Below, piece after piece: positions 34,073 through 34,894 of a stretch of 64,000 nucleotides of DNA. Numbering within the stretch: position 1 is the stretch's first letter; every line of letters begins with the position of its first letter. The notes beneath the pieces were generated by a model. That model worked only from the letters and a program-made list of their open reading frames with translations, was not told the origin of the DNA and did no database searches. Location: assembly GCF_964204645.1 (NCBI RefSeq), contig NC_134030.1:21040210-21104209 (forward strand), given 5' to 3'. The stretch is from Tubulanus polymorphus (lineage: Eukaryota > Animalia > Nemertea). Position numbers and translations under genes: made by a program.

Positions 34073-34894
34073 TTAATCCCGTTTCATATCTTTCAAATAT
34101 ATAGTTTCTGAGCGAGAAACAGATGCGGCTCGATGGTATTCAACTAGCTGATTGAGTGAATTGAATTTCACAACCCAAAGAAAGTACTTCCCGGCACCAT
34201 CTCTCAAAACTTTGAAATGTTGTACATCGCTCTGGTATCTGGAAATACAAAATGATCGTACTTACTACTTGGGATTTATCACTGCCAAATGTAAATACGA
34301 ACGAGTGAATAAATTTTAAATGAAATGTTCGAAAAAGAAATAAAAAAACTTACTTAACAGAAAGTGCGAAATCGCCCTCTGTTGATTCGCTGTCTCGAAT
34401 TAAAAAGGCTCCGTCGTGCGGTTGGCTTTTCAATATATCCTCAGCGACACTGCGTGTAATTCGACCATGATACCATCTATAACATTAATAGGCATCTTCA
34501 TTTTTCAATGTGTTCCACCGAAAACTATGGGGAGCATGACGTGACAACTCAAATTCTGCCAATCAAGCAGCTCTGAGACAACATAATCTTTCTTTGGAAA
34601 ATAATTCTTCGAAGTGAAATTGAAAAAAAACTTACCCGTTTGGTTTTACCTGAACATAATTAAGAGGTATGCGACCTTCCCTGCCAAATTGTTCAGCAGT
34701 TGGCCAATGGCTATCGTCATGATATTTTAAAATCTGGATTCGATACACAAATATAGAGTTAATTCGAATAATCAATAAAAAAAACCAGATAACTGCATTC
34801 CATATTCGTTCTCTACCTTTAAGATTGATCCTCTGTTGAAACCGAGTTCATCATCATTGGCTGGCGTAAAATCGTGTAATGCTACGGCTTCCAT
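34073..34894 (-). CDS. GRB2/Drk-like adaptor, SH3-SH2 only, 154 aa. Exons 34894-34817, 34733-34636, 34476-34354, 34238-34073
   Basis: Translation: [154 protein letters not shown]. Exons are 78/98/123/166 nt with GT-AG sites. Minus-strand AATAAA at ~33985-33990. Confidence 0.93.

Follow-up and report, generated by a model that had tools for sequence, protein, structure and literature searches.

The minus strand of the 64-kb window analysed here (the whole stretch of DNA, C6:21040210-21104209) carries a real, intron-containing gene derived from GRB2/Drk that encodes an N-terminal SH3 domain (N-SH3) and an SH2 domain alone. The gene, referred to below as C6, is transcribed and, on balance, we favour the reading that its product is an expressed two-domain derivative of GRB2/Drk acting either to bias the pathway as an adaptor or to compete with the three-domain protein. 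GRB2, Drk and SEM-5 are among the most conserved signalling adaptors of animals and, to our knowledge, their three-domain plan is usually treated as fixed. A non-exhaustive literature search found no published description of a natural GRB2 without the C-terminal SH3 domain (C-SH3).

The whole gene occupies positions 34894-34073 of the window (minus strand) and consists of four exons with lengths of 78, 98, 123 and 166 nt. Coding exon 1 (34817..34894, minus strand, 78 nt) opens with the ATG at 34894-34892, encodes the first half of the N-SH3 and is matched by Pfam SH3_1. The second half of this domain is encoded by exon 2 (34636..34733, minus strand, 98 nt), which carries W36, P49 and Y52 together with the substitutions Y37P and F47R. 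Exon 3 (34354..34476, minus strand, 123 nt) encodes the first half of the SH2 domain, with R67, R86, S88 and S90 present and S96 replaced by alanine, and exon 4 (34073..34238, minus strand, 166 nt) supplies the second half, with H107, K109 and W121, as well as a three-residue tail closed by the TAA at 34075-34073. The introns measure 83, 159 and 115 nt and are bounded by GT..AG in all three cases; the GT donor of intron 1 lies at 34816-34815, while intron 3 (34239..34353, minus strand, 115 nt) is removed in the RNA-derived contig described below. A scripted join of the exons yielded 462 nt, or 154 codons, with zero internal stops, in agreement with the four short exons encoding an intact SH3-SH2 protein that had first been proposed.

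The 154-aa protein ends in ..YLKDMKRD, the TAA following three codons past the last SH2 motif. No GT donor was present in the last 30 nt before this stop, and an AATAAA at 33989-33984 lies 84 nt beyond it, so that the arrangement given in the preliminary description (a stop directly after the SH2 domain, no preceding donor and AATAAA some 85 nt further on) is reproduced by measurement. The 3' untranslated region including this AATAAA (33984..34072, minus strand) can be aligned with that of a paralogue, C2a, which is introduced below. Instead of the lack of introns and the poly(A) remnant expected of a retrocopy, C6 has three GT..AG introns at positions common to C2a and to a further paralogue, C2b.

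Database searches with the C6 gene were run exon by exon. Exon 1 matched the Pfam family SH3_1 with an E value of 5.6e-5 and a score of 23.1 bits, barely exceeding the cut-off of 22.9, and the SH2 family was matched by exon 3 (E 1.7e-15) and exon 4 (E 2.2e-5). Exon 2 had no match in Pfam at all, to an SH3 model or otherwise; its nearest solved structures are the N-SH3 of Drosophila Drk (2a37, E 1.6e-5) and then GRB2. Exon 4 aligns to residues 103-152 of human GRB2 (E 1e-23), and SH2 chains of human GRB2 are its best solved relatives. An N-SH3 of the GRB2 type is thus present in C6, as seen from the Pfam match of exon 1, the structural relatives of exon 2 and the residues W36, P49, N51 and Y52, and so is the central SH2 domain with its phosphotyrosine-binding arginines and the tryptophan that selects pYxN.

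Residues were numbered on mammalian GRB2, and 20 key positions were evaluated in an alignment with 17 three-domain proteins. C6 retains F9, D15, E16, W36, P49, N51, Y52, R67, R86, S88, S90, H107, F108, K109, L120 and W121, among which are the pY-binding arginine of FLIRDS (R86) and the tryptophan of FLWVV (W121) whose retention had already been pointed out. It has H7, as in Drk, and is changed at three of the 20 key residues (Y37P, F47R and S96A), which is about what neutral drift would be expected to produce. C2a keeps the key residues except for Y37S and shows a conservative F47Y. The mean identity of C6 to the 17-protein panel is 0.71 for the SH2 domain and 0.52 for the N-SH3, compared with 0.72 and 0.59 for C2a, 0.68 and 0.60 for the three-domain gene of this genome, C4, and 0.70-0.76 and 0.66-0.69 for four true three-domain proteins. 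Position 47 we take to match the ligand-contacting aromatic residue found elsewhere among SH3 domains, such as the tyrosine of GYIP in Src. An arginine at this position should change or weaken the binding of proline motifs, and Y37P and F47R, both unusual in an N-SH3 of this type, are together likely to result in a changed or weakened ligand preference.

Expression was assessed from public sequencing runs, four of the five runs containing the stretch being compared over positions 33300-34985 (1,686 letters, avoiding the (TA)n array). Run X5, from 2014 and with about 60,000 short records, belongs to another study and another sample than the DNA runs. It contains a contig of 328 nt that covers 34459-34354 and 34238-34017 with zero mismatches (100% identical to C6), joins 34354 to 34238 and leaves out intron 3 to the letter (115 nt; CT..AC on the plus strand, equivalent to GT..AG on the minus strand), and then goes on for 56 nt beyond the stop without a further joint. 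As a genome-wide DNA search found no intron-less copy of the gene, this contig comes from RNA, and it comes from the C6 copy, since a contig of the paralogue would show a mismatch at about every ninth base. The evidence, one assembled contig from one run that covers exons 3 and 4 and part of the 3' untranslated region, shows that the C6 gene is transcribed, that intron 3 is correctly removed and that the transcript runs through the stop into the 3' untranslated region. Transcript data had been proposed as a check on the end of the gene; the X5 contig displays splicing of intron 3 and no splice to an SH3 exon after exon 4.

Run X1 has the character of DNA from the species sequenced here and shows no difference from the window within the gene; just downstream, at 33384-33558, four bases and one inserted A set it apart from the window. 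Runs X2 and X3 were ruled out as RNA: both cover intron 2 and are therefore DNA. Contigs of these two runs, which stem from one sample, break at 34258 and 34370 and continue outward with the same 11-13 foreign letters, which are mutual reverse complements. These loose ends are probably the linker of a proximity-ligation library, the alternative being a structural allele.

Searching the genome itself (268 Mb in 77 contigs, the window being C6:21040210-21104209) with each exon as query led to three further loci. C2a (C2:29592543-29593333, minus strand) has exons of 78, 98, 123 and 166 nt, ends in ..LLKDMAQD with its TAA in the same place as that of C6 and has an alignable 3' untranslated region. 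C2b begins 1.15 kb upstream of C2a, likewise on the minus strand, is composed of exons of 78, 101, 123 and 154 nt and ends in ..EEKVLLQ, three codons earlier; the two form a tandem of SH3-SH2-only genes on one strand (C2:29592543-29595232). C2b is highly diverged, with R67, H107, K109 and W121 replaced and an SH2 domain only 40% identical to that of C2a. A GTAAGT is found one codon past the C2b stop, as if an old donor had persisted behind a new stop. The fourth locus, C4 (C4:24598893-24602087, plus strand), comprises exons of 78, 98, 165 and 160 nt followed by a C-SH3 exon (Pfam SH3_1, 7e-16). It is the only SH3-SH2-SH3 gene of the genome, C6, C2a and C2b being SH3-SH2 only, and represents the separate full-length GRB2 for which a search had been suggested. 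The preliminary description of a hidden GRB2/Drk paralogue was therefore right as to descent, but C6 does not stand alone: it is one of three SH3-SH2-only genes. The SH2 domain of C4 contains a loop insertion of 14 residues before the FLVR strand; SH2 insertions of varying length like this one are seen in GRB2 of oyster, annelid and rotifer and are absent from the protein of the nemertean genus Lineus.

C6 and C2a are the two copies of a duplicated unit, which in the window covers 33935..34985 (minus strand; 82% identity over positions 38-1083 of the query in the genome-wide DNA search). The alignment takes in the introns; it begins at a TA-rich block some 95 nt before the ATG and stops roughly 50 nt after AATAAA, and outside these limits the sequences are unrelated. 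Because the homology spans everything from the upstream block to past AATAAA, the unit carries the likely promoter and terminator along with the coding region and, as C2a has the same stop and 3' untranslated region, the two-domain form is older than the duplication that separated C6 and C2a. An (AT)72 microsatellite at 34988-35132 is located directly upstream of the unit, where C2a has a short TA-rich block.

Divergence between the two copies is unevenly distributed. Introns differ at 10.4% of positions (33/316 nt), exons overall at 14.9% (69/462 nt) and exon 2 alone at 26.5% (26/98 nt), which makes exon 2 the fastest-changing part of the C6 gene, with a divergence 2.5 times that of the introns (Fisher p 2e-4). 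The proportion of nonsynonymous change in exon 2 is higher than the divergence of the introns (z 2.9); when three outgroups were used to polarise them, the changes in this exon split 11 to 10 between the copies, and no sign was found of gene conversion of exon 2 from C2b or C4. Nei-Gojobori dN/dS between C6 and C2a is 1.12 for the whole coding sequence, with values of 1.28 in the SH3 exons and 0.99 in the SH2 exons, the synonymous differences behind these estimates numbering no more than about 13. At a ratio of about 1.1, the comparison gives no hint that amino acids have been constrained since the two copies separated.

Such a ratio is what would be expected from a young duplicate decaying to a pseudogene, that is, a gene transcribed, open by chance and functionless, in which the high amino-acid rate reflects relaxed constraint. 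We regard this explanation as rather unlikely. It accords with the occurrence of Y37P, F47R and S96A at about the neutral expectation, with the loss of the Pfam SH3 match of exon 2 and with the presence of C4, a three-domain gene that remains for the standard job. The reading frame, however, tells against it. No indel event is found in 462 exonic nt, as opposed to 16 events in 539 aligned noncoding nt of the same unit, where 13.7 would have been expected in the exons (P ~1e-6), and P is still ~0.01 if the exonic rate is taken to be three-fold lower; the contrast is somewhat overstated, as homopolymer runs are commoner in introns than in exons. Stops are absent from both C6 and C2a (P 0.03-0.09 for both copies in a neutral simulation), and all six splice sites are intact in each of them. 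Moreover, relaxation alone could not make exon 2 diverge 2.5 times as fast as the introns, and the two-domain form had already persisted through the interval between truncation and duplication. In our reading, the open frame would be under selection in both young copies, with amino-acid change unrestrained and, in the second half of the N-SH3, faster than neutral. Diversifying or directional selection would fit this pattern better than decay, although the sample is small and a local mutational cluster possible.

Two earlier statements have to be qualified in this light. C6 had been called maintained, which is borne out for the reading frame by the indel contrast but not for the protein sequence, where amino-acid change proceeds at or above the neutral rate. 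Likewise, the differences cited for a diverged N-SH3 (HWPT and GRIP) are confirmed, but they reflect fast change in both young copies rather than slow divergence, given the dN/dS of about 1.1 and an exon 2 that outpaces the introns. Exon 4 of C6 at one point appeared to be frozen, all seven polarised changes falling on C2a; this was discarded when the outgroups used, L027 and L029, proved to be coral genes. Re-polarised against C4 and the general consensus, the exon 4 changes split 3 to 4. C6 and the two coral genes share RAAS..SE by convergence.

A different origin, by Pack-MULE-like transposon capture that moved a gene fragment and left an expressed by-product without host function, appears improbable. 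In its favour, the unit has the size of a gene (about 1.05 kb), its end is 55 nt away from a faint similarity to a MULE transposase, and other repeat relics flank both copies. The transposase relic reported behind the gene does exist as a similarity at ~33640-33880 (plus strand), but as a match it is weak and sub-threshold (Pfam MULE, E 0.18), and its position is outside the shared unit. Only two copies of the unit are present in 268 Mb, and no terminal inverted repeats were seen around it, though hits from the (TA)n array dominated the list of repeats. The conserved frame argues against a functionless fragment as well.

Elsewhere in the window, a single-exon frame of 366 aa at 26114-27214 (plus strand) encodes a receptor of the rhodopsin family (Pfam 7tm_1, 1.3e-13; Srw-type, 2.1e-12). 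Long frames at 24815-25993 and 41063-41928 are open in several frames and on both strands and consist of short tandem repeats (..NTIEYNAIQYNRIQ.., ..ICCLYPAP.QT..); these are probably satellite DNA and not genes.

The absence of a C-SH3 exon was addressed at three scales. When the C-SH3 exon of C4 was compared with the whole genome in six frames, 41 SH3 matches resulted, none of them within millions of bases of the C6 or C2 loci. Within the 64-kb window, eight C-SH3 tails of other animals together with that of C4 matched the N-SH3 exons of the gene only, and the same query set, applied to 9.5 kb around the C2 copies, again matched N-SH3 exons and no C-SH3. The claim that no such exon follows downstream thus withstands genome-wide, window-wide and paralogue-flank searches, none of which placed a C-SH3 near the gene. 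The proposed proximity of the stop to the ancestral last junction is likewise supported by C4, in which exon 4 ends in ..RDMTM directly followed by the gt donor: the C6 stop lies one codon past the exon 4 donor of the three-domain gene of this genome. An origin of the stop through a GT-to-GA change in the old donor was considered and could not be demonstrated; beyond the last ATG that they have in common, the sequences cannot be aligned. That C6 is an ordinary three-domain GRB2 whose distant downstream C-SH3 exon was missed, or whose stop is an assembly error, is close to refuted, for although long introns are known in GRB2 genes of other animals and the coral gene L027 spans about 7.6 kb, no C-SH3-like piece is found in the window or near either locus, the RNA-derived contig passes the stop straight into the 3' untranslated region, DNA contigs of run X1 match the window across the gene and the paralogue C2a has an identical stop placement.

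Returning to the favoured reading, C6 as an expressed pathway-biased adaptor or competitor, a possible mode of action can be outlined from the functions of the individual domains. In GRB2, SOS is the ligand of the N-SH3 and Gab that of the C-SH3 (PMC2747914), and it is the N-SH3 of Drk that has the highest affinity for Sos peptides (PMC10532153). The SH2 domain of C6 would still dock on receptors and docking proteins at their phosphorylated pYxN sites, while the protein would offer a single, altered SH3 output, would not recruit partners of the Gab/Dos type that bind the C-SH3, and would lack the second SH3 that strengthens Sos binding. A pYxN binder unable to recruit Gab/Dos, as predicted here, fits the domain functions described in the literature. 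Since SH2 docking would be kept and both Gab/Dos recruitment and the second SH3 lost, C6 should bias the pathway as an adaptor or occupy, in competition with the C4 protein, the docking sites that both would use. With Y37P and F47R, it may bind Sos poorly and serve chiefly as a competitor, or other ligands may have been gained, and a fast-changing N-SH3 could indeed point to new SH3 ligands.

Short forms of this kind are not confined to the genome under study. ENA sample ERZ25767047 contains at least six intron-less GRB2-like frames of 152-161 aa that are SH3-SH2 only (P0081, P0240-P0243 and P0329; for example at L031:8001-8474 and L032:6001-6486), four of the six being located on one 2.2-Mb contig. 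They end in ..KDMV or ..VDMD, with the stop one residue past the last SH2 motif. These genes share with the C6 family the two-domain architecture and the presence in multiple copies but, unlike the copies of this genome, which keep three introns, they have none and carry a loop insertion in the SH2 domain. As they are intron-less, they look like retrocopies. P0081 (L031) ends in ATG GTG TAA, as if copied from a transcript reading into the intron after the SH2 exon. In a tree of 41 proteins, C6 and C2a group together (99/97), the short genes of ERZ25767047 form a separate clade (100/98), these being the only two groupings with support, and the branch of C2b is very long. The position of the ERZ25767047 genes in a clade of their own, apart from C6 and C2a, points to an independent origin, and the separate appearance of the same architecture in another animal suggests that the short form has a use. 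In the 41-protein tree, neither C4 nor the short copies could be placed closer than the other to the three-domain gene of Lineus.

Protein searches with exon 4 mostly returned open-frame GRB2 fragments of other animals that read into the next intron, and none of these ends like the copies of this genome. The closest of the fragments (92% identical) are coral genes with a normal C-SH3 exon. L027 and L029 were rejected as relatives, being coral genes that encode a GRB2 of the Porites type (P0264); saturation of their synonymous sites shows that they are not close kin. A search with P0081 led to three-domain proteins of many phyla, including one of Lineus longissimus (P0259, 214 aa), the SH2 domain of which is 77% identical to that of C2a, 73% to that of C6 and 66% to that of C4. 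Cnidarians apparently have two types of GRB2, one represented by P0264 (Porites) and P0257 (Hydractinia) and the other by P0340 (Pocillopora) and P0295 (Actinia). Several residues of C6 are shared with one cnidarian type, apparently by convergence.

On present sequence evidence, C6 is a lineage-specific variant of its gene family, of interest mainly for the evolution of adaptors. A wider view, in which two-domain GRB2 derivatives are recurrent natural modulators of RTK signalling, their SH3 ligand surface being reshaped by positive selection so that they redirect or damp pYxN signalling, can be put forward only tentatively. In either case, stand-alone, expressed genes that keep the SH2 domain and lack the C-SH3 would amount to a natural experiment on the contribution of each SH3 domain, as Crk I does for Crk II.

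In comparison with GRB2, Drk and SEM-5, the N-SH3 and SH2 domains of C6 place it clearly in this family. Its exon 4 is about 80% identical to residues 103-152 of human GRB2, its exon 2 is closest to the N-SH3 of Drk, the phosphotyrosine-binding residues and the pYxN tryptophan W121 are kept, and exons 1 and 2 (78 and 98 nt) match those of the three-domain gene C4. It departs from these adaptors in that the linker and everything past the SH2 domain are replaced by three residues and a stop, and in that its N-SH3 carries Y37P and F47R. Because the C-SH3 is absent, C6 is without a binding site of the Gab/Dos type and without bivalent binding of Sos.

The human GRB2 isoform GRB3-3, to which a competitive mode of action is ascribed, is likewise a natural form of GRB2 without the full set of standard parts. 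It arises by skipping of the 123-nt exon that corresponds to exon 3 of C6, and what is lost differs: in GRB3-3 both SH3 domains remain and SH2 function is gone, whereas C6 keeps the SH2 domain and loses the C-SH3. The nearest known parallel in logic is, by analogy, provided by Crk I and v-Crk beside Crk II. Crk I is the two-domain form of Crk II without the C-terminal SH3 (PMC2689226) and, like C6, these are natural two-domain adaptors that occur beside a full form and miss its last SH3 domain. Crk belongs to a different family with different partners, and its domain order is SH2-SH3 instead of the SH3-SH2 of C6. Moreover, Crk I is produced by alternative splicing of one gene, while the C6-type short form is fixed in separate genes.
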